Source: Paraphysomonas bandaiensis
Lineage: Eukaryota; Protista; Chrysophyceae
Direction: 5' to 3'
DNA: 35,386 nt
Assembly: GCA_965644295.1 (NCBI GenBank)
Contig: CBFFRP010000265.1
Location: 1 to 35,386 of the forward strand
The notes under the pieces are model-generated. The model searched no databases. It had not been told where the DNA came from and saw only the letters and a list, made by a program, of their open reading frames with translations. A program made the position numbers and the translations under genes. This document shows positions 4,928-32,607 of the stretch, piece after piece; position 1 is the stretch's first letter, and every line of letters starts with the position of its first letter.

Positions 4928-5063
4928 CGGTGTTTTATACTCTAGCCATATATTAATGATATTGCAAACATTGTACACGTGCAATACATCACATTTCATC
5001 TTCGCAATCAAACGAAAATTGGACGTCTCTCGTTACAACAGCCTCCTATATTTCATGATTTTC

Positions 5064-7169
5064 GGCCCCCTAATATGCGAGTATACTTCTCTATGATTTA
5101 TAATAAGGTTATAAAACTTGACTGGTTCGAATAATTCATTATTATTACTAGTAGAACGTTTTATATGTCTTCATGAAAAATAGCTACGTGAAAACAGGTG
5201 CTAAGAGATGAATTCACTTTATAAACTTTATATCAGTCAAGAGAAGTAATGCTGCTTTACATCATTCAATAGAAGTGACGCTGCTGCTTCTTCTGCAGCT
5301 TTCTTTCGGCTCATTGGAGGACTTTGATGCCTATGTGCTGTACCATTCAATTCAATAGATGCAACACAGACAAAGGACCCATTCTCAATTTCAATTTCGA
5401 ATTCAGGCTCCACACCGATGTAACGTTTAGTCAGTAACTCCAATAACTCACACTTAGGATGCTTCTGTGTAGCACTGCTGCCTCTTTCTGGTGATGCGTT
5501 ACTTGATTCTCTTCTAACAGATTCAACCACCTCTTTAACATCATTCAATAGAAGTGCTGCTGCTGCTTCCTCTGCAGCTTTCTTTCGACTCATTGCAGGG
5601 CCTCGATGCCTATATGCTGTGCCATTCAATTCCATAGATGCAACACAGACAAAGGCCCCATTCTCATTCTCAATTTCGAATTCAGGCTCCACGCGTGTGA
5701 AATGTTTAGCCAGTAACTCCAATAACTCACATTTAGGGTGTTTTTGTGTACCATTGCTGCAATTCTGAGATGAAAGGGACACTTGTTGTAGTTGTCGTCC
5801 GAGAGATTCAATTTCGCCTTCAACATCGTTCAATAGAAGTGACGCTGCTGCTTCCTCTGAAGCTTTCTTTCGACTCATTGGAGGGCCTCGATGCCTATAT
5901 GCTGTACCATTCAATTCCATAGATGCAACACAGACAAAGGCCCCATTCTCATTCTCAATTTCGAATTCTGGCTCCACACCAGTACAATTTTTAGCCAGTA
6001 ACTCCAATAACTCACTTTTGGGGTGTTTTTGTGCACCATTGACGCCATTTTCAGATAAACGGGACTCATGTCGTAGTTGTTGTCCAAGCGATTCAACTTC
6101 GTCTTTGACATCATTCAATAGAAGTGCTGCTGCTGCTTCTTCTGCAGCTTTCTTTCTACTCATTGGAGGGCCTCGATGCCTATAAGCTGTACCATTCAAT
6201 TCCATAGATGCAACACAGACAAAGGCCCCATTCTCATTCTCAATTTCGAATTCAGGCTCCACGCGTGTGAAATTTTTAGCCAGTAACTCCAATAACTCAC
6301 TTTTGGAGTGTTTTTGTGTACCATTGACGCCATTTTCAGATAAACGGGACTCATGTCGTAGTTGTTGTCCAAGCGATTCAACTTCGTCTTTGACATCATT
6401 CAATAGAAGTGCTGCTGCTGCTTCTTCTGCAGCTTTCTTTCTACTCATTGCAGGGCCTCGATGCCTATAAGCTGTACCATTCAATTCCATAGATGCGACA
6501 CAGACAAAGGCCCCATTCTCATTCTCAATTTCGAATTCAGGCTCCACATCAGTGAAATGTTTAGCCAGTAACTCGAATAACTCACACTTAGGATGCTTCT
6601 GTGTAGCGCTGCTAGTAGCTTCAGGTGATGCGTTACTTGATTCTCTTCTAACAGATTCAACCACCTCTTTAACATCATTCAATAGAAGTGCTGCTGCTGC
6701 TTCCTCTGCAGCTTTCTTTCTACTCATTGGAGGACTTTGATGCCTGTATTCAGTGTCGTTTAGTTGTATGGAGGCAGTGCAGACAAAGGCCCCATTATTG
6801 GCATTCGCAATCTCGAATACAGGCTCCACATCAGTGAAATGTTTAGCCAGTAACTCGAAGATCTCACATTTAGGATGTTTAGATACTTGCATTGTGTAGT
6901 TTGTTTAGTTTCTTTATGGTTGTGATTCGGCTGGAATTGTGAGATCGCTGCACTTGAGATTCTTCACGAGTGTCCAGCTGCTGGATTCGTTCAGAGCTAG
7001 ATTGTCCTGGTTTTGGACGAGGGTCTCCATCTGAGATTATGGGACAGGGTTTTGGTACACTTGAAATCCCCTGAATTTGGGAAAAGCCTACGTTTTTTTG
7101 CCTTACGTAACATTTATATCAAGAAATATGCTATTTTCATTTGTCAGTTCCCTAAAAAAGAGGGTATTT
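5064..7169 (-). repeat. Left arm of long inverted duplication
   Basis: Reverse complement matches 11392-13217, from aaataccctc upstream of the gene to tcgcatattagggggcc downstream of it. Confidence 0.95.
5237..6892 (-). CDS. Tandem dsRNA-binding-domain-only protein, copy A (6 dsRBDs, intronless)
   Basis: Six 93-95 aa units HPK[CS]ELLELL...PEFEI...FVCVASMELNG...G...SRKKAAEEAAAALLL, matching the alpha-beta-beta-beta-alpha dsRBD consensus (PKSxLxE helix 1, KKxAExxAA helix 2). Confidence 0.9.
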   Translation of the reverse strand: MQVSKHPKCEIFELLAKHFTDVEPVFEIANANNGAFVCTASIQLNDTEYRHQSPPMSRKKAAEEAAAALLLNDVKEVVESVRRESSNASPEATSSATQKHPKCELFELLAKHFTDVEPEFEIENENGAFVCVASMELNGTAYRHRGPAMSRKKAAEEAAAALLLNDVKDEVESLGQQLRHESRLSENGVNGTQKHSKSELLELLAKNFTRVEPEFEIENENGAFVCVASMELNGTAYRHRGPPMSRKKAAEEAAAALLLNDVKDEVESLGQQLRHESRLSENGVNGAQKHPKSELLELLAKNCTGVEPEFEIENENGAFVCVASMELNGTAYRHRGPPMSRKKASEEAAASLLLNDVEGEIESLGRQLQQVSLSSQNCSNGTQKHPKCELLELLAKHFTRVEPEFEIENENGAFVCVASMELNGTAYRHRGPAMSRKKAAEEAAAALLLNDVKEVVESVRRESSNASPERGSSATQKHPKCELLELLTKRYIGVEPEFEIEIENGSFVCVASIELNGTAHRHQSPPMSRKKAAEEAAASLLLNDVKQHYFS

Positions 7170-7484: not shown

Positions 7485-9270
7485 ATGCTCTCCTATCTCT
7501 TCTACATTACAATCTTCTATCTACCTATAGCTATATGCATACCTATCAAATCTAATGATGTTATCACTATATCAGCATTAGATCACACTATATGGGATTC
7601 AACAGCTATTATAACATTCTATCAAGATGATGAAGATGCTGTACAATGTCAATTTACGAATATTGCTATTGATTTTTCGACTATATATTTTATTGTATCA
7701 GATCCCATGAAAAGACAACAAGCAGCTCATGATATATTCAATTGTTGTGTAAATATTATTAAACATGATGAAATAGATGAAAGGAAATGTAAAAATTCTG
7801 TACGAAGTCAATTATGTAGTTGTTTTTATCCATTTAAATATGTTCCATCTGTCATATCACCAGAAAATGCGAAGAAGAAGTTTATGCCATTGCATGGAAA
7901 GACATGGTTGATGCATCACTGGAGTGAATGGCATCACATTGACCACTACACAATGAAAGTATTGGAGTTGCAAAACCTTTTATATAATGCAAAACATGTA
8001 AAAGATATGTGGTTCAGTGAGTTGCCTGCACCAGAGAGCATTGATCAATTACTTAGTATGGATTATGATGGAACACCCAGTGGTGATAGTTTCGAGACAA
8101 TGTTTTCAGAGATGCTGTACACAGTATTGGGTCGAAAACCTCATTATTTTGTCAATAAGAATGGTGCTGGGAAGCATTTGCGTCATCTCTACTTCGCCTC
8201 AGATGCATCCCTGAAACCCTTGCGCCGTGTGCTACCTCTATGTGAATATGTAGAGCTTGAGGAAAGTACATTAGGAGAGGACCTCTTGAGTTTAGGTGCT
8301 AAGATTGGTATCAAACACAACGCTGGTGAATATATGTCCAATTTGCTTGGTATTGGGAATTCCACTCTCCGAAAATTATTGCTAGAAGATCGCGACGGTG
8401 TGTTTCCTGTGGCGAACACCTTGGCAGAAGTGTGCTTGGAAGTACGCATCATGCGGATTATAAAATTGAACCAGGCGATGCCTCTACATAACTGTGGTCG
8501 TGGTGCATGTCAACCATACTTTTTGGATCATGCATATATGTCTCCTGTATATAAGAACAACATTCCTTGCCCGTATGAATCCAGTGCGGAGAGTGTGAAG
8601 TATGGTTTCAGGAAGTATTTAGAAGCTTATCACAGCAAATTATACGAAAGCGTGCAGTGTGTCAGTAATTTAACTGCATCTGCTAGTGTTAAGGTTGCAA
8701 TTTTACAACGGTTTGAGGGGTCTGGTACACGTAGCTTTGTAAACCTAGATCGGATGTTGCTTTCTATATACCAAATTACTTCCCAGGAATCCATTGAGAT
8801 TATGTTCATCAGTAGTAAAACTCCAGCTCATATACAAGCACTGAAGTTTTGCAGTTTTCATATCCTTATAGCACCTCATTCATCCCAACTGTCGAATTTG
8901 ATTTTCACACCGGCAGGGGTTTCAATTATTGAACTGCAGAATGAAAAACTGATTGAAGATACATTTTTATGGTTAGGAGAGCGCATGAACCTTCACTACC
9001 AGAGATTGAAGCAAGGTGAGTAACATGTTACACTATTTAGTGGTAGTTATATATATTGCAGTTGGTATATGGTTTTGTGTGTATAGTGGTATAGGTTGTG
9101 GAGATTATCAATTTTTCTATGCAGGTAATATCGCAGTCAGTGGTGAAAACAATGTACCCGATTCTGTTACCCACCCGAAGATGGCAAACCAGTTAGTACA
9201 TATTAGTAATTTTGAGAAAGCATTAGATAACGCCTTGCAAAACCTTCGTGAAAATGGTTTCGTGGCTTAA
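7485..9270 (+). CDS. Secreted/Golgi glycosyltransferase family 61-like (DUF563-type) protein
   Basis: Exons 7485-9015 and 9125-9270. Hydrophobic N-terminus. C-terminal RSFVN...Q...ILIAPHSSQLSNLIFTPAGVSIIEL resembles the GT61 HGAxLxNxxF...xxEL motif. Confidence 0.75.
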
Positions 9271-11391: not shown

Positions 11392-13217
11392 AAATACCCT
11401 CTTTTTAAGGGAACTGAAAAATGAAAATAGCATATTTCTTATATAAATGTTACGTAAGGCAAAAAAAACGTAGGCTTTTCCCAAATTCAGGGGATTTCAA
11501 GTGTACCAAAACCCTGTCCCATAATCTCAGATGGAGACCCTCGTCCAAAACCAGGACAATCTAGCTCTGAACGAATCCAGCAGCTGGACACTCGTGAAGA
11601 ATCTCAAGTGCAGCGATCTCACAATTCCAGCCGAATCACAACCATAAAGAAACTAAACAAACTACACAATGCAAGTATCTAAACATCCTAAAGGTGAGAT
11701 CTTCGAGTTACTGGCGAAACATTTCACTGATGTGGAGCCTGTATTCGAGATTGCGAATGCCAATAATGGGGCCTTTGTCTGCACTGCCTCCATACAACTA
11801 AACGACACTGAATACAGGCATCAAAGTCCTCCAATGAGTAGAAAGAAAGCTGCAGAGGAAGCAGCAGCAGCACTTCTATTGAATGATGTTAAAGAGGTGG
11901 TTGAATCTGTTAGAAGAGAATCAAGTAACGCATCACCTGAAGCTACTAGCAGCGCTACACAGAAACATCCTAAGTGTGAGTTATTGGAGTTACTGGCTAA
12001 ACATTTCACTGATGTGGAGCCAGAATTCGAAATTGAGAATGAGAATGGGGCCTTTGTCTGTGTTGCATCTATTGAATTGAATGGTACAGCTTATAGGCAT
12101 CGAGGCCCTGCAATGAGTCGAAAGAAAGCTGCAGAGGAAGCAGCAGCAGCACTTCTATTGAATGATGTCAAAGACGAAGTTGAATCGCTTGGACAACAAC
12201 TACGACAGGTGTCCCTTTCACTTCAAAATGGAAGCAATTGTACACAAAAACACCCCAAAAGTGAGTTATTCGAGTTACTGGCTAAAAATTGTACTGGTGT
12301 GGAGCCTGAATTCGAAATTGAGAATGAGAATGGGTCCTTTGTCTGTGTTGCATCTATTGAATTGAATGGTACAGCATATAGGCATCGAGGCCCTGCAATG
12401 AGTCGAAAGAAAGCTGCAGAGGAAGCAGCAGCAGCACTTCTATTGAATGATGTTAAAGAGGTGGTTGAATCTGTTAGAAGAGAATCAAGTAACGCATCAC
12501 CTGAAGCTACTAGCAGCGCTACACAAAAACACCCCAAAAGTGAGTTATTCGAGTTACTGGCTAAACATTTCACACGCGTGGAGCCTGAATTCGAAATTGA
12601 GAATGAGAATGGGTCCTTTGTCTGTGTCGCATCTATTGAATTGAATGGTACAGCATATAGGCATCGAGGCCCTGCAATGAGTCGAAGGAAAGCTGCAGAG
12701 GAAGCAGCAGCAGCACTTCTATTGAATGATGTTAAAGAGGTGGTTGAATCTGTTAGAAGAGAATCAAGTAACGCATCACCAGAAAGAGGCAGCAGTGCTA
12801 CACAAAAACATCCTAAGTGTGAGTTATTGGAGTTACTGGCTAAACGTTGCACCGGCGTGTCGCCAGAATTCGAAATTGAGAATGAGAATGAGTCCTTTGT
12901 CTGTGTCGCATCTATGGAATTGAATGGTACAGCATATAGGCATCGAGGCCCTCCAATGAGTCGAAAGAAAGCTGCAGAAGAAGCAGCAGCAGCACTTCTA
13001 TTGAATGATGTAAAGCAGCATTACTTCTCTTGACTGATATAAAGTTGATAAAGTGAATTCATCTCTTAGCACGTGTGTTCTCGTAGCTATTTTGCACGAA
13101 GACATATAAAACGTTCTACTATTAATAATAATGAATTATTCGAACTTCGTACTAGTCAAGCTTTATTTATAACCTTATCATAAATCATAGAGAAGTATAC
13201 TCGCATATTAGGGGGCC
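11392..13217 (+). repeat. Right arm of long inverted duplication
   Basis: Reverse complement of 5064-7169, one dsRBD unit shorter. Confidence 0.95.
11669..13033 (+). CDS. Tandem dsRNA-binding-domain-only protein, copy B (5 dsRBDs, intronless)
   Basis: Five units of the same consensus as copy A. Same start (MQVSKHPK) and end (VKQHYFS). Confidence 0.9.
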   Translation: MQVSKHPKGEIFELLAKHFTDVEPVFEIANANNGAFVCTASIQLNDTEYRHQSPPMSRKKAAEEAAAALLLNDVKEVVESVRRESSNASPEATSSATQKHPKCELLELLAKHFTDVEPEFEIENENGAFVCVASIELNGTAYRHRGPAMSRKKAAEEAAAALLLNDVKDEVESLGQQLRQVSLSLQNGSNCTQKHPKSELFELLAKNCTGVEPEFEIENENGSFVCVASIELNGTAYRHRGPAMSRKKAAEEAAAALLLNDVKEVVESVRRESSNASPEATSSATQKHPKSELFELLAKHFTRVEPEFEIENENGSFVCVASIELNGTAYRHRGPAMSRRKAAEEAAAALLLNDVKEVVESVRRESSNASPERGSSATQKHPKCELLELLAKRCTGVSPEFEIENENESFVCVASMELNGTAYRHRGPPMSRKKAAEEAAAALLLNDVKQHYFS

Positions 13218-17416: not shown

Positions 17417-20400
17417 ATGAGTGATAATGACACATCATCACTATCATTAGATCGTAGTATATTTACTATAGAAGATACTTCAGATAACTGCTATCGGGAT
17501 ATTATTCAAGCCTTAAAATCACGTGGATGGAGAACAAACTCTACCACAATGAAACGAATGTCCAAATTCGAGAAGAAACGGTACATTCATCCAATCTTTT
17601 CTTCATTATCTTAATCTTCTACAGGCTAGCAATACTTAAAGGAGAACTTCCAAGTTTTATATGGACAATTCATGAAAAAGATATTCAGTTTAATGAACTT
17701 TTACCTCATCAAATTGTGAATCATTTTGAAGGGATTACATGTTTAACTACCAAGAATGGATTATGTGAATTATTGAGGGATATGAGTTGGATTAATATTG
17801 ATTCCACAGATATATCTCCACGGTGCGTAGCTATATACTAATGTCCTAATAAAGTTTTGTATAATGAATTAGTATATAAATCAGATGCTACAATCTTGGT
17901 GATCCTGTGCAAAAAGTAGAGTTTGCTGAAGATTTTCGAATTTCTGCGGCAGTCAATATATTGTTGCAGGTGGTGTATACCATGAAATAGTTTTAATGTA
18001 ATCTTTTGGTGCTAGTAGTTTTATATTCGTTTCTTTTGGAGCATAACCATTTCTATTATGCTGCATGTATACTGCTGAAACGTACCTTGTCATCATCAAC
18101 TCTAGCCTTTGCGTGGTGTGCCTGACTGACTTATACAGTTTACTCTCCCTGATCATGAAAGTTCCTTTAGTGATGTTTCAACCAATCGTATTGCATCGCT
18201 ATGTTGTTGCGCCCTCTCGCAGTATCTGCATGTCAAATATGGTGGAATGATTGGCTCTGGGTTTTCTGATTCGGATGACCGGAAAGTTGACAAAATTTGC
18301 AACATGTCAGTCTCACAATGGGATGAGATACTGGCAGTGAGCTATGAATTGTCAGAAACTGACATCGACAATAAGGTAATAGGGGAGCATCTTAATTCCC
18401 TACTGGATACAAAAGAGTTAAAAGTAACTCCATATTCAGCACTGAAAGCGTGGGCAATATATTTGTTGCATAAATACGCCATTAGCCACCGCCAACTCTT
18501 CATGGGTGGACACAAAAATATATGGGTCGTAAAAGCCCCTGAGGCATCTAAAGGCGCTAATATTAAACTGTTCTTTCGATTGGGAGACATTTTAGACTGT
18601 GAAAGAGGTATGCGTGGACGCACTGTGCAAAAGTACGTTGAGCGGCCGTTTTTATACCGCGCAATTACTCCTGGCAACGCTTTAGAAAGTTCAACGCCGT
18701 ATTATATGGAGTATCGTACATCGCCCCATGTTAAATTTGACCTACGGGTGTGGGTGTTGGTTACTGGATTTCCTGCAGATGGAGAGCTATCAGCATATGT
18801 GTACAATAAAGTATATGGACGCCGCTGTCCTTATCCATACAAGTACAATGTGGATACTATTGGTGACGTGAACATACATGTCACGAACTACTCCGTTCAG
18901 AAACAGGGCAAGTCTAGTGGACCAGAATGTGGGCAGGATGTCAGCAGGAGGTACGCTTCAGAATGCATATCACCTAGAAGCCAGAGTGCCGCCGCTGGAC
19001 GTCTCCGCAGCACCGTTCAATCTGTGCGCAATAAAACTGTACCACTTGCATCTGGTGGAGATGCAAAGACGCCACACGCGACATCAAATATGACTGGCAA
19101 CGACCTACTTGTATCTCATGAGCAGCTGTTGGAATTACTGGACTGGGTGAGTAAAAATGAAAATAGGCGTAGAGAGTGGCCTACTAGTGGGGAATTACTC
19201 TGGAGTGAACATATATGGCCCAGATTAACTAGCAAGATAATGCATTTGCTTACCAAAACTAGAGAGTCGGTGCAACACAGAAACAATTCTTTTGAATTTC
19301 TTGGTTTTGACATTATGTTAGATGAGAATTTAGAGCCATGGATATTGGAAGTGAATATGTCTCCCGCTATGGCTCACCGGAACCCTCAACACAATGAATT
19401 TATTAGGTGTATGGCTGATAGATTAGTTTCTACTGTGTTTCGTGACGGGATTGATACTGTGGAATACCCACCTGTAACTTGTGATCGTCAAGCTGGTGAT
19501 GAACCAGCAGATGCAAAGTTTTTACCCTGTCGTAGCATTTATAAAGGTAATTGGGAGAAGTTGTATTCCTGTGATGGCATTGGAAACGAGAGTCGGAATG
19601 AAGAAAGCAGTTTTAAATCTGAACGTGTTTTAGTGACTGGAATGGGAATTCTCAGGAAAGACGAGCCCTTGTTGATGGAATATTTCGGATATTGTCAGAA
19701 AGAGGTTGTAGCGACGGCCAATCGTGCATCAGATATAATTACAGCTGAACATGGCACTGTCCGTGTGTCAAGCAGGCCTGAGTGTCTGTCAAGGCGATCC
19801 AACGACTTGAGTAAACCAACAAGTGGACTAAGAACTAGTACTGGAGTTGTAGCTGCTAGACCCAAGTCGGCGTCATCATTGAGGAAATCTTCTTATAATT
19901 ACACGATGAATCAAAGCTGCAAACCGCTTGGGGTGCAACCAAGTAACCCTTCCAATAGTATGCAGTTCGTGTCGCACCTCGACTTTACCTTTGCAGCTGT
20001 AGGAAAGTCTATTTCCAAAGCTGAAATCAAATTTTTGGACAGCTGTAACGAAAAGTTTGCGTGTATTCTTCTTTTGCAGAGGTAGATATACACATAACTG
20101 TATTCAAACTTGAATATTAATGCTTGTGTTCTAGGTGGTGGAGAAGGTATATCATCCGCACGCACCTTTATTATGCACGAGAAAAGTACTGTGCTCGTAT
20201 TGTCCAGTGTGCGTGGCGTTGTTACTGCAGTAAAACCAACCTATGGCTACTACGTCGCCAGAAGGCAGCCATTTTAGTTCAGTGCTGCTGGCGACAAAAA
20301 TCAGCTCGTTTATACCGTGCATTCCTCATCAGAACCAATGCTGCTGTTGCGATTCAGGCTGTAGCAAGGTGCCTTTTGGCTAGACGCTACTGTACGCGTA

Positions 20401-23519: not shown

Positions 23520-24485
23520 TTAAATGTTATGATCTGAATAAAACAGTTTCATTGTATTCTCAAGTACAATGTCAGCTAAAACTGTGGGCTCCATTTCCTT
23601 AATTGCTGCCACAACCTCCAAGACTTGCACTATCATGCACGGTTCCGCACGATCTTTGACCATCCAACCAGGTTCATACCTTTCCTTCTTTTTGGTAGGA
23701 AAGTGGGTAGTAACATACTTCATTGAGGCATGCGAATTTTTCATGGCACACCACGGGGCATCCGTTTCAAGCAGCAATCGGTCCACCGGAATCTGTTTCA
23801 CAACAGCTAAATTTTCCTCAGTTTTCAAAGAGCAACCATTTATCCCAATATACAGGCCCATAGAAGTATACGCCACCATTTCCTCTATCGTTCCTGTAAA
23901 ACTGTGAACCACTCCACCTGCGCTGATTTTATCGCGATGCTCAGTGACAAGTGCCAAGAAATCACCATCAGTGTTTCTGTCATGAAAAAACATAGGCAAC
24001 TTAAATTCACTTGCCAATTCGAGCTGTTTTATAAAGCCAATACGCTGCCAATCTTTATCACAAAACTGTAGTCGATCATAATCTAATCCACATTCTCCGA
24101 TAGCGGCCACATGACCAGTGGATAGACCGTCTTGTATAATACTACGCAATTCTGCAACAACAATTTCCTCTCCTCGTTTAAATTCATCACAACGAGTTGG
24201 ATGTACACCCACAGTAATCATTAATTCATTATTATGTTGTATATTACGAACAAATTGTAATGATTTCTTACTTTCATCTATATTCCCTGATGTTATAATA
24301 TAACGTATAACACCCATGGCATGACCTCTAGATAACACCATCTGTATATCCTCTGCATGTTTTTGTTTCTTGTTATATATTCCCATGAACATATCATCGA
24401 ATAAATTCAATCCAATATCTATAAGTTTATTCCCGTATGGTGGGAGTGTAGTGGAGGGGAGTGAGGAGGAAGTAAAGCCTTCCAT
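23520..24485 (-). CDS. TATDN1: TatD family deoxyribonuclease (TATDN1-like)
   Basis: IDIGLNL, TVGVHPT, AIGECGLDYDR, LPMFFH, GVVHSFTG, YIGINGCSLK, LLETDAPWC. Single exon. Confidence 0.92.
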   Translation of the reverse strand: MEGFTSSSLPSTTLPPYGNKLIDIGLNLFDDMFMGIYNKKQKHAEDIQMVLSRGHAMGVIRYIITSGNIDESKKSLQFVRNIQHNNELMITVGVHPTRCDEFKRGEEIVVAELRSIIQDGLSTGHVAAIGECGLDYDRLQFCDKDWQRIGFIKQLELASEFKLPMFFHDRNTDGDFLALVTEHRDKISAGGVVHSFTGTIEEMVAYTSMGLYIGINGCSLKTEENLAVVKQIPVDRLLLETDAPWCAMKNSHASMKYVTTHFPTKKKERYEPGWMVKDRAEPCMIVQVLEVVAAIKEMEPTVLADIVLENTMKLFYSDHNI

Positions 24486-24674: not shown

Positions 24675-24885
24675 CTAGTACACAGGTACACGTATATGTA
24701 CAGAGGTACACTCTGCAGAGTACTATGATACTATACACTGCTGTGTGTCATACATGTACACAGGTACATACCACAGTACTATGATACTATACACTGCTGT
24801 GTCATATATGTACACAGGTACATACCACAGTGCTGTGTCATATCTATAGGTATACACTGGTACAGACCACAGTACTGAGATGTAG
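24675..24885. repeat. Degenerate ~55-60 bp tandem repeat upstream of TatD
   Basis: Recurring gtacacaggtaca...cacagtactatgatactatacactgctgtgt units. Confidence 0.7.
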
Positions 24886-25226: not shown

Positions 25227-26342
25227 ATGATTGTTACTACAACTATTCTTCTATCACTCTTAGCATCAGCTAATGCAGGATGTGATAATGGATGCAGTGG
25301 GCATGGATCATGCTCCTGTGGTGTTGAATGCGGATGCATATGTTATGATAACTGGGGAATGGGCCTAGCTCACGACACTGGTGACTGCTCTGATCGCATA
25401 TGCCCTTTTGAGCTTGCCTGGGTTGATGCCCCTCTTGAGAACGGTCTTCGCCATAGATATGCTGAGTGTGCAGGCAGAGGAATTTGCAACCGTGGCACAG
25501 GTGAATGCGAGTGCTTCGAAGGATACGAAGGCAAGGGATGCCAACGCACTACCTGCCCTAATGACTGCTCCGGCCATGGAACTTGCGAGTACATTGAGGA
25601 TATGGCCTATGCCGCTGTAGAATATGATTATCGCCATATGGAGTATCTTCAGGATCCTCTCACTTTCACTTATTACGGGTGGGATGCGAAGAAAACCCGT
25701 GGATGTGTATGCGACCCCGAATATGCTGATGTTGACTGCTCCAAGAGAATGTGCCCTTACGGAAATGATGTCCAGGATCGCCGTGAAAATCTTCTCGAAG
25801 ATATTCGGTACCAGACCCAGAGAATCCGCTTCACTGCTGACTCTGCCGGTAATCCTGCCAACCTCCTCTCTCAGACTGGCAACACATTCGCCCTTACTTT
25901 CAAGACTCAACTCAATGAGACCTTTACCACCATCCCAATTGTTTTTGATGCCACTGATATCCTTGGTATGGCCAATGCGATGGAGGCTGCTCTTCTCAAC
26001 TTGCCTAATGGTGTTATCGATGGTGTGCATATCCACACTGGTGTGGATGATTCCACTACCCCCACTGAACTTGTTGTCAATGTGACTTTCACAGGCGATA
26101 GCAATCAGGGACGCCAGCATCTCCTAACTGTCGAGGATTACAAGTGTGACGCAGGATGCTTTCCTAAACTCACCGGAATCCATGTCGAGCCCATGACTGG
26201 AAATAACACTGAAACCTATTTGGCAGATATGAACAGCTTTGAGTGCGGAAGAAGAGGAAAGTGCGACTATAATACTGGCTTATGCGAGTGCTTTGAGGGA
26301 TTTACTGGCCCTGCTTGCGGAACATGCACGTCTCTCATTTAA
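25227..26342 (+). CDS. Tubular mastigoneme protein (Ocm/Sig1-like, EGF-domain, secreted)
   Basis: Signal peptide, CSGHG...DCSDRICP...AWVD, ECAGRGICNRGTGECECFEGYEGKGCQRTTCPNDCSGHGTC, WD...CVCD...DCSKRMCPYGND, C-terminal ECGRRGKCDYNTGLCECFEG: the stramenopile mastigoneme protein architecture. Confidence 0.88.
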   Translation: MIVTTTILLSLLASANAGCDNGCSGHGSCSCGVECGCICYDNWGMGLAHDTGDCSDRICPFELAWVDAPLENGLRHRYAECAGRGICNRGTGECECFEGYEGKGCQRTTCPNDCSGHGTCEYIEDMAYAAVEYDYRHMEYLQDPLTFTYYGWDAKKTRGCVCDPEYADVDCSKRMCPYGNDVQDRRENLLEDIRYQTQRIRFTADSAGNPANLLSQTGNTFALTFKTQLNETFTTIPIVFDATDILGMANAMEAALLNLPNGVIDGVHIHTGVDDSTTPTELVVNVTFTGDSNQGRQHLLTVEDYKCDAGCFPKLTGIHVEPMTGNNTETYLADMNSFECGRRGKCDYNTGLCECFEGFTGPACGTCTSLI

Positions 26343-30676: not shown

Positions 30677-32607
30677 ATGAATTACGGTGGAAGTGATATT
30701 GGTGCAATTGTTGCAGATATAGGCAGTCATTCCTCTAGAATAGGCTTTGCAGGAGATGACTACCCCAAAGCCTATACATCAACGGTAATTCACATACTCT
30801 ACTACCACTTTAATACAATATCATAACATACGGTATTATATTATACTACAGTGTGTAGGTATTATAAATAATCATACAGAAGATCAAATGGAAGTTGAAG
30901 TGAGTCAAGAGAATTCTAAGAATATTCATTTCAATTTATCAGAATTTCATCCACATATGGAAATTGAACATATTGTACGGGATGGTATCATAACTAACTG
31001 GGATTTACTTGAAGAATTATGGGATCATTCATTAGCCAATCATCTTAAAGTAGATACGAAGGAGACGCCTATTCTCATTGCAGAGAAGTCGTATAATTCA
31101 TCTGATGCCAGACAGAAGTAAGTCACTGTATTGCTATATATATATAGTGTATACACGTATGTATTGTATGGCACTAGTATTAAGAGTAGTGTATGAATCT
31201 AGTGTACATGTGTAGTATATGAATGTATGTGTACATGTATAGTACATGAGTATAGTGTTTACACGTATGTATCATATGGCACTAGTATTAAGAGTAGTGT
31301 ATTAATACAGTATGTGAATCTAGTATATGAAGATATGTGTACATGTATAGCATGTGAATACTTGTGTATGAAGTATAGTATATTAAGAGTAGTGTATGAA
31401 TCTAGTGTACATGTGTAGTATATGAGTATAGTGTATACATGTATGTATAATATGACCCTGGTATTAAGTATAGTATGTGAATATAGTGTGCATATATAGT
31501 CCATAAATACAGTGTATAAAGCTAGTATATGAATCTAGTTATATATATATATACTAATACGTTCTACAGAATGTGTGAGCTTATGTTTGAGAAGTACAAT
31601 ACTCCAGCACTGTTCATATCCAAAGATGCAGTACTATCATGCTATTCGTGTGGTAAAACAACTGGTGTGGCTATTGATTGTGGTGCGAGTGGGACGGTAG
31701 TCACCCCTGTATATGAAGGATGGGCTGAAACTAGTGCCATTAGTCGAGGGGTAGTTGGGGGGAGGTTCATGGATGCTTATCTCTTAAAAATGCTGGGTCG
31801 CCATATGCAGCAACACTATTCACTTCCACAACCAAAGCCTCTATTCCGTCTCAAGAAAGTTGTTGATCCCGTCACAGGAGCATTATCTTGCCAGCCCAAT
31901 AATGCCCTTGAGAATGTTCATCCTAGCTATGACGCGTATATGCATCTGGAAATGGCTCGTGACATGAAAGAATCGGTATGCCGCACCGCTGAGGCGTCAT
32001 CGACCCTCACAGATGGAGATCCACGGTATGCGAATATTCCCCTGCTCCCGCATGTTCTTCCGGACGGCACAGTAGTGGACGTCGGGGCAGAGCGGTTTCT
32101 CCCTCCAGAATTACTCTTTGATCCTTCACAGCTTGATTTGGAGGCACCAGAACTGGTGGCTCTTGGGTTGGCGCCCTCTTGTTCTGGTGGTCTTCCAGGG
32201 AGTACTGATCCAGTGGAAAAGTTAGTGGTGGACTCCATTTTGCGCTGTGATGCTGATAGTCAGGTATGCAGAATGTGTCTATATTCATCTGTTTGTTAGA
32301 TCGTATGTATTTCAATCACGAGACTGCTATACAGGCCACCTTCGCCAACAATTTAATTGTGACGGGCGGAAACTCTGCCTATGATGGCATGCCCGAACGC
32401 ATCCGACAAGAGGTCGATCGAGCCGCCCATAAAAATGCTCCAAATTGGAGGACTAACGTACTTTCCTCAGGAGCTAAGGAACGCCCGATATGTACCTGGA
32501 TAGGGGGTTCTATTATAGCATCTCTTGGGTCTTTACGCGAAATGTGGATGGCGCGCAGTGAATATGATGAACATGGAAGTGCCTTAATCGATAGGAAGTG
32601 CCCGTAG
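30677..32607 (+). CDS. ARP4: Actin-related protein 4 (ACTL6/BAF53-like)
   Basis: Exons 30677-30784, 30852-31117, 31570-32263, 32335-32607. YGGSDIGAIVADIGS...RIGFAGDDYPK, ELMFEKY, WIGGSIIASLGS, C-terminal RKCP. Confidence 0.92.
31140..31500. repeat. Low-complexity minisatellite expanding ARP4 intron 2
   Basis: Recurring tagtattaagagtagtgtatgaatctagtgtacatgtgtagtatatga units. Confidence 0.75.

Follow-up and report, generated by a model that had tools for sequence, protein, structure and literature searches.

An inverted pair of dsRBD arrays in Paraphysomonas bandaiensis and its probable concerted evolution

Two genes of the chrysophyte Paraphysomonas bandaiensis were found to encode proteins made only of tandem double-stranded RNA-binding domain (dsRBD) units, six in gene A and five in gene B. 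They lie as an inverted pair on contig CBFFRP010000265.1 of GenBank assembly GCA_965644295.1, and the whole stretch analyzed (35,386 nucleotides (nt), positions 1 to 35,386 of the forward strand) is called the window here. The units are mosaics of one another. The explanation that we favor, and consider likely, is that concerted evolution shaped the pair, that a short variable patch just after helix 1 consists of old haplotypes, each specific to a position in the array and lodged in the least constrained loop of the domain, rather than of a fast-diversifying contact code, and that the product is a multivalent protein linked to RNA silencing. The shuffling mechanism itself is ordinary, being the concerted evolution of a tandem domain array, doubled here as an inverted pair. 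A full-text literature search found no paper on dsRBD arrays with tandem repeats and concerted evolution, and a dsRBD array of near-identical, still-exchanging units is apparently undescribed. As a rule, dsRBDs are ancient modules that have diverged from one another.

Gene A (5237-6892, minus strand) is an intact open reading frame (ORF) of 551 amino acids (aa) that consists of a four-residue MQVS leader, units A1 to A6 and a QHYFS tail. Gene B (11669-13033, plus strand) is an intact ORF of 454 aa with the same architecture, including a four-residue leader, and five units, B1 to B5. Each unit spans 93-95 aa, made up of a 71-codon domain core and a linker of 23-25 residues, and the last unit of each gene is shorter and ends with the QHYFS tail. 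Tandem Repeats Finder returned periods of 285 nt (5.7 copies) and 279 nt (4.8 copies), each with 86% matches. Pfam dsrm (PF00035) was matched by six stretches in protein A (E 5.8e-37, 126.5 bits) and five in protein B (E 9.7e-34, 116.2 bits), against a curated cut-off of 23 bits and with profile positions 1-64 of 66 covered. The second Pfam match of the units was the related Dicer_dimer model, PF03368 (E 1.4e-27). Protein identity to A2 is 75-93%, or 68-69% for the first units (A1 and B1), and DNA identity is about 86%. The source assembly (62.5 Mb in 669 contigs) holds these two array copies only, plus one distant dsRBD. An antisense ORF within gene B (12223-12852, minus strand, 209 aa) was also seen, which most likely arises incidentally from the GCA/GAA-rich repeat rather than being a gene. 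The inverted arms are separated by about 4.8 kb of unique DNA, whose sole clear gene is an intact GT61-like glycosyltransferase ORF (7485-9023, plus strand, 512 aa) with a weak match to Glyco_transf_61 (E 4.2e-07).

Recombination was examined on a codon alignment of all 11 units, or of the nine non-first units where stated. The initial annotation of the window had proposed that unit variants arise by segmental conversion and unequal crossover within and between the two copies, and this proposal stood. The units showed incompatibility and two-parent tracts rather than a tree-like history at the nucleotide level. The pairwise homoplasy index (PHI) test gave p 0.0002-0.0004 at the best window size, for full units and the domain core alike. 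Among the nine non-first units, 194 of 325 informative site pairs were incompatible. The Hudson-Kaplan (four-gamete) method called for a minimum of 12 exchanges (Rm = 12) in the 213-nt core. A 3SEQ-type triplet scan placed 103 of 912 triplets at the permutation floor, with very clean two-parent patterns. All four gametes were present in most pairs of the binary polymorphisms C/S (codon 5), L/F (8), A/S (31), M/I (38) and A/P (51), which had been said to reassort independently. The clean mosaics, the unit numbers of six and five and the identity gradient described below point the same way. Shuffling of segments among units by recombination is strongly supported.

The nearest neighbor of a unit switches from segment to segment. 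A4 shares identical sequence with B2 over strands 1-2, with B5 over strands 2-3 and with B3 over the patch. Helix 1 is identical in B2 and B5 and again in B3 and B4. Identical segments are also shared across the two genes by non-orthologous units (A4/B2, A4/B5 and A5/B3). The clearest mosaic is B3 (12248-12526), where 33-34 A4-like informative sites are followed by 36 consecutive sites like unit 1; this second tract (nt 164-287) has 1 difference from A1/B1, despite a distance of 38 nt between the cores of B3 and unit 1. A3 (6029-6313) is a mosaic with an A4-like helix 1 and Asn codon, identity to A5 over nt 41-125 and identity to A2 over nt 159-282, and its triplet pattern runs from nine A5/B4-like sites into 36 A2-like sites. 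The core of A1 (6599-6880) differs from the other units at 35-45 of 213 nt, and from nt 164 onward this unit is identical or near-identical to the other units with the same linker class. In B4 (12527-12805), everything after the helix 1 shared with B3 is A5-like. B5 (12806-13030) combines the helix 1 of B2 with the strands 2-3 of A4.

The linkers fall into the two classes that the annotation had described, X and Y, with a Y' variant, in the order X, Y, Y, Y', X in gene A and X, Y/Y' hybrid, X, X in gene B. The tetrapeptides it had listed after helix 1 also proved exact. Gene A (minus strand) carries HFTD in A1, HFTD in A2 (6314-6598), NFTR in A3, NCTG in A4 (5744-6028), HFTR in A5 (5465-5743), whose X linker contains ERGSSATQ, and RYIG in the terminal A6 (5240-5464). 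Gene B (plus strand) carries HFTD in B1 (11681-11962), which is 2 nt from A1, HFTD in B2 (11963-12247), whose linker resembles that of A2 in its 5' half and that of A4 in its 3' half, NCTG in B3, HFTR in B4 and RCTG in the terminal B5. The 12-nt hypervariable patch that encodes these residues (codons 14-17) lies at 6830-6841 (A1), 6548-6559 (A2), 6263-6274 (A3), 5978-5989 (A4), 5693-5704 (A5) and 5414-5425 (A6) in gene A, and at 11720-11731 (B1), 12002-12013 (B2), 12287-12298 (B3), 12566-12577 (B4) and 12845-12856 (B5) in gene B.

Six patch haplotypes occur among the 11 units, and the types are ordered alike in the two genes. Between genes, the patch is identical at 12 of 12 nt for HFTD (units 1 and 2), NCTG (A4/B3) and HFTR (A5/B4), and the terminal pair, RYIG and RCTG, is 3 nt apart. 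By this nucleotide identity between positional partners, the types are older than the gene duplication, and no turnover of them has followed it. NFTR and RCTG had both been taken for crossovers between other variants, which was half right. NFTR of A3 (AAT followed by TTC ACA CGC) is a true junction of the NCTG and HFTR haplotypes. A crossover origin of RCTG was dropped at the DNA level: B5 has CGT TGC ACC GGC and NCTG is written AAT TGT ACT GGT, so that the third positions of Cys, Thr and Gly all differ, three synonymous differences, and the nearest patch is RYIG of A6. To judge by its codons, RCTG is a diverged copy of the terminal-unit patch.

The annotation had also placed the focus of variation just after helix 1. 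Codons 14-17 do hold 7 of the 23 amino-acid state changes of the 71-codon core in the nine non-first units (scan permutation p ~0.001), and the focus is not significant in the seven internal units alone (p 0.2). The RKKAAEEAAA helix was found near-invariant in protein, as claimed, with 4 amino-acid changes, though it has 8 synonymous ones. Ratios of nonsynonymous to synonymous change (dN/dS) were calculated from per-column minimum mutation counts (first value) and from pooled Nei-Gojobori pairs (second value). They were 0.49/0.44 for the patch, 0.28/0.23 for the core outside the patch and 1.0/1.06 for the linkers; helix 2 gave 0.16. Synonymous changes in the patch are raised (4 in 2.6 sites, Poisson p 0.04), and a McDonald-Kreitman-like Fisher test of the patch versus the rest of the core showed no nonsynonymous excess over synonymous changes (p 0.50). 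By these counts, the patch is a spot of deeper divergence without a nonsynonymous excess, the linkers evolve neutrally, and the core is under purifying selection, which is strongest on helix 2. Purifying selection on genes A and B is clear and marks both as real coding genes.

Homology of the arms extends beyond the ORFs, by about 275 nt on the upstream side and about 185 nt on the downstream side. The upstream flank of gene A (6893-7167, minus strand) matches that of gene B (11394-11668, plus strand) in 272 of 276 aligned columns, and homology stops abruptly beyond. This shared block of about 275 nt marks where the inverted duplication has its inner edge, and it may be the promoter and 5' untranslated region. 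The downstream flanks (5053-5236, minus strand, and 13034-13217, plus strand) match in 163 of 195 aligned columns, with insertions and deletions. Identity of gene A to gene B drops in the 5' to 3' direction from 99.6% to about 91%: A1 and B1 are identical at 280 of 282 nt, A2 and B2 have 18 differences, A6 and B5 differ at 20 of 213 core nt, and the downstream flank is about 84-92% identical. This gradient suggests that conversion between the arms has been recent at their 5' ends. Since the arms are inverted, exchange between them must have gone either by conversion without crossover or by a crossover that inverts the spacer.

A3 is probably a hybrid unit that arose in a five-unit array when its units 2 and 3, the present A2 and A4, crossed over unequally, so that gene A gained a unit and gene B kept the older number. 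It sits between A2 and A4, resembles A4 at its 5' end and is identical to A2 at its 3' end, which is the signature of such a hybrid. The A5-identical tract (nt 41-125) would have been laid onto A3 after this crossover, and the 3' third of B3 would have been overwritten by unit 1 sequence; we infer the direction of these events. Under the favored explanation, unequal crossover would have changed the unit number, turning A from a five-unit into a six-unit array, and many short conversion tracts of 20-130 nt would have been copied from unit to unit, within each gene and between the inverted genes, to yield combinatorial mosaic units. Purifying selection would hold the domain core (dN/dS about 0.25) and the linkers would drift neutrally (about 1.0). 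Conversion would have left the patch types in order, unchanged at the nucleotide level for three of the four positional types.

An AlphaFold2 model of one unit (predicted local distance difference test score 73) has a helix at residues 3-16, strands at 21-27, 30-39 and 42-47, and a helix at 53-90 that extends into the linker. This order, alpha1-beta1-beta2-beta3-alpha2, is that of the dsRBD fold. Structural matches by Foldseek (E 0.02 or worse) and VIA (Z 5.2 or lower) were weak because of the middling model confidence and the run of helix 2 into the linker; many of them were dsRBDs (HYL1, DCL4, Loquacious, NF90, ADAR2 and RNase III). The RNA contacts of canonical dsRBDs are a Glu halfway along helix 1, a GPxH motif in the loop between strands 1 and 2, and KKxAK at the start of helix 2 (PMC11309768). 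The mid-helix 1 Glu, E9, is invariant in 11 of 11 units, and the L/F polymorphism at codon 8 adjoins it. None of the units has GPxH in the beta1-beta2 loop, where a two-residue N-G turn (EIENENGAF) with no His is found. In the Lys motif of helix 2 every unit reads KKAAE, where Glu replaces the third Lys of KKxAK, whereas the closest paralogue has KKEAK. Unit isoelectric points are 5.1-6.1, and those of the whole proteins 5.4-5.5, versus 8.8 for the paralogue dsRBD. In the model, the patch forms the last turn of helix 1, which caps it C-terminally, together with the loop that leads to strand 1; it lies 5-8 residues past E9. Across the dsRBDs of seven credible remote relatives this loop is the most variable in sequence and in length (indels of 1-9 residues). 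The hotspot is thus most simply read as a surface loop under relaxed constraint. KKxAE and the absence of GPxH are shared within the subfamily.

The closest paralogue of the units is a dsRBD 43% identical to A1 (BLASTP E 2e-14), at residues 23-88 of an uninterrupted 2740-aa ORF elsewhere in the assembly (contig C355:111191-119410, plus strand). The same ORF encodes DEAD/Helicase_C domains, a eukaryotic RNA-dependent RNA polymerase (RdRP; PF05183, E 1.5e-109) and a nucleotidyltransferase resembling poly(A) polymerase. We infer that the array genes derive from a dsRBD of this type and act with the RNA-silencing machinery. The array product would be a multivalent protein of dsRBD folds that coats or measures long double-stranded RNA (dsRNA), or docks onto the helicase-RdRP protein.

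When 1.84 billion representative proteins were searched exhaustively with HMMER, a profile of the units gave only 11 hits, the best with E 2e-8. Four of these, P0002, P0005, P0006 and P0010, were rejected as spurious, being repeat proteins that match the profile in part only. The remaining seven are unnamed environmental proteins with 1-4 units each. One of them, P0007 (417 aa, from a Logan assembly), carries two units of this subfamily and then the beginning of a helicase (motif I, PTGSGK); its gene model appears truncated and of a dsRBD-helicase design like that of the 2740-aa protein. PDB sequence searches with one unit, the 11-unit profile and a three-unit piece returned no hit up to E 10. 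Metagenomes scanned with peptide patterns and with a conserved DNA pattern of 38 nt held no close relative or environmental allele, exact-sequence look-ups found no record, and a word-index protein search with gene B found no match, with low-complexity words having probably swamped the query. Hits in the ESM Atlas, with scores of 0.83 or lower, fell in dsrm and Dicer_dimer clusters. The array pair is lineage-specific in the sense that no close relative was found outside this genome and very near ones.

The neighboring ORFs are genes of ordinary eukaryotic kinds and encode a tubulin-tyrosine-ligase-like protein (18247-20085), a TatD DNase (23520-24485), an EGF-repeat protein (25227-26342) and an actin exon (31529-32299). 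Intergenic tandem repeats rich in TA/TG occur at 24693-24831 and 31143-31449, with periods of 54, 108, 27 and 13, and similar low-complexity DNA of the TATATGTACA type flanks the dsRBD cassette.

Could the mosaics have arisen without recombination? Serial, tree-like duplication of units with recurrent mutation might account for some of the 12 four-gamete intervals, which could be recurrent hits at mutable sites. It was rejected on the PHI test, in which incompatibility grows with distance, and on the triplet scan, with its uninterrupted two-parent runs of 36 sites. Nor does it explain how A1, with so distant a core, comes to have a 3' third identical to that of B3. Such a history cannot yield two-parent tracts of this length, and we give it practically no credence. 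A different role for recombination was suggested by the initial annotation, which likened the units to PRDM9 or TALE arrays; recombination would combine specificity residues after helix 1, and diversifying selection would favor new RNA targets. The near-identical units, a four-codon hotspot with 7 of 23 amino-acid state changes, the six patch haplotypes among 11 units, the truly recombinant NFTR and a codon 8 polymorphism beside the canonical minor-groove contact Glu speak for this idea. However, the patch dN/dS is 0.44-0.49 and synonymous changes are equally enriched there (Fisher p 0.50). The haplotypes are old and position-specific, with an order common to both genes and nucleotide identity for three of four positional types, and RCTG is no crossover. 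In the model the patch also appears to lie off the canonical contact, in a helix 1 cap and loop where remote relatives have many indels, and the units lack GPxH and are acidic. Beyond the dynamics of the arrays the likeness is not supported, and we consider this explanation very unlikely.

Several points weigh against the explanation by concerted evolution and old patch haplotypes. The nonsynonymous changes of the patch (7 in 9.4 sites, Poisson p ~0.0007) are a real excess, and if selection kept the patch types apart, it would raise the linked synonymous differences too, so that functional specialization of positions is possible. In its fullest form, the order of the patch types would be kept by selection against homogenization, each position would have its own partner or RNA-shape preference, the flanks would be reshuffled by conversion, and the array would be a position-coded dsRBD reader working with the helicase-RdRP enzyme; we think this improbable. 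The sample is 11 units from one assembly, and the selection statistics rest on a few dozen changes. Repeats of 285 bp that are 86-95% identical are hard for short reads, and the assembly has 669 contigs, so that the mosaics could partly or wholly reflect mis-joined repeats, or two haplotypes misplaced as an inverted pair. Against such an artefact, frames stay open over 1.4-1.7 kb in both arrays, unit pairs other than A1/B1 differ by at least 8 nt in the core, and the patch order is coherent between the arms. Moreover, unlike fold-backs, the arms differ in unit number and flank divergence around about 4.8 kb of unique spacer with its intact GT61-like gene. We judge an assembly error to be a very slight prospect. 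Finally, dsRNA binding looks doubtful from the motifs, with no GPxH loop, KKAAE for KKxAK and acidic units. The units might instead be non-canonical (type-B-like) dsRBD folds that bind proteins, and the arrays scaffolds or decoys for the silencing machinery. The Dicer_dimer match (PF03368, E 1.4e-27), the two-residue turn between strands 1 and 2 without GPxH, the Glu for the third Lys of KKxAK and the acidic charge versus the basic KKEAK paralogue would suit this alternative. On the other hand, the mid-helix Glu and two Lys are invariant, no other part of the unit is conserved as strongly as helix 2, and KKxAE is found as well in the dsRBDs of bacterial RNase III, which do bind dsRNA. Protein binding in place of dsRNA binding is a serious but less than likely alternative.

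Whatever their ligand, the arrays offer a compact natural case for measuring conversion tract lengths within a protein-coding repeat. They also provide a candidate accessory factor for a protist silencing enzyme that, unusually, unites helicase and RdRP in one protein. Should the units bind dsRNA, their even spacing in arrays of 5-6 could let them sense the length of long dsRNA or coat it. If they do not, the dsRBD fold would have been reused as a protein scaffold.

Staufen, with its five dsRBDs, and TRBP, Loquacious, R2D2 and HYL1/DRB4 likewise consist mostly or only of several dsRBD folds joined by flexible linkers. Some of the domains in these Staufen and Dicer-partner proteins are non-canonical and bind protein, and the proteins are tied to RNA silencing or dsRNA handling. 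The domains within each are old and divergent, typically 20-35% identical. In contrast, the units of A and B are near-identical, still exchange sequence and lack GPxH. The subfamily signature of the units recurs in P0001, P0003, P0007 and P0008, uncharacterized proteins from JGI and Logan metagenomes with 2-4 units per protein: helix 1 reads NPKG-LLEL, strands 1 and 2 are joined by a short turn that lacks GPxH, and helix 2 has TKKAAEQAAA (KKxAE). P0007 runs on into a helicase. They differ from A and B in being distant (best E 2e-8), in having units more divergent from one another and in the length of the loop between helix 1 and strand 1.

With PRDM9 zinc fingers and TALE repeats, the arrays share tandem near-identical units of a nucleic-acid-binding type, number change by unequal exchange, mosaic units and a few adjacent variable codons. 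Unlike those systems, the variable codons of A and B have no dN/dS above 1, and the synonymous sites around them are not homogenized. The variable haplotypes are conserved by position and, in the model, appear to lie off the canonical contact, and no code of one unit for one target is evident. Inverted pairs and palindrome arms, such as those of the Y chromosome, are also comparable. Their arms lie around unique DNA and convert non-reciprocally, and the 5' flank and unit 1 of genes A and B together show 3 changes in about 560 nt. In the pair described here, each arm is a tandem array in its own right, so that conversion also runs out of register and shuffles units beyond homogenizing the arms.

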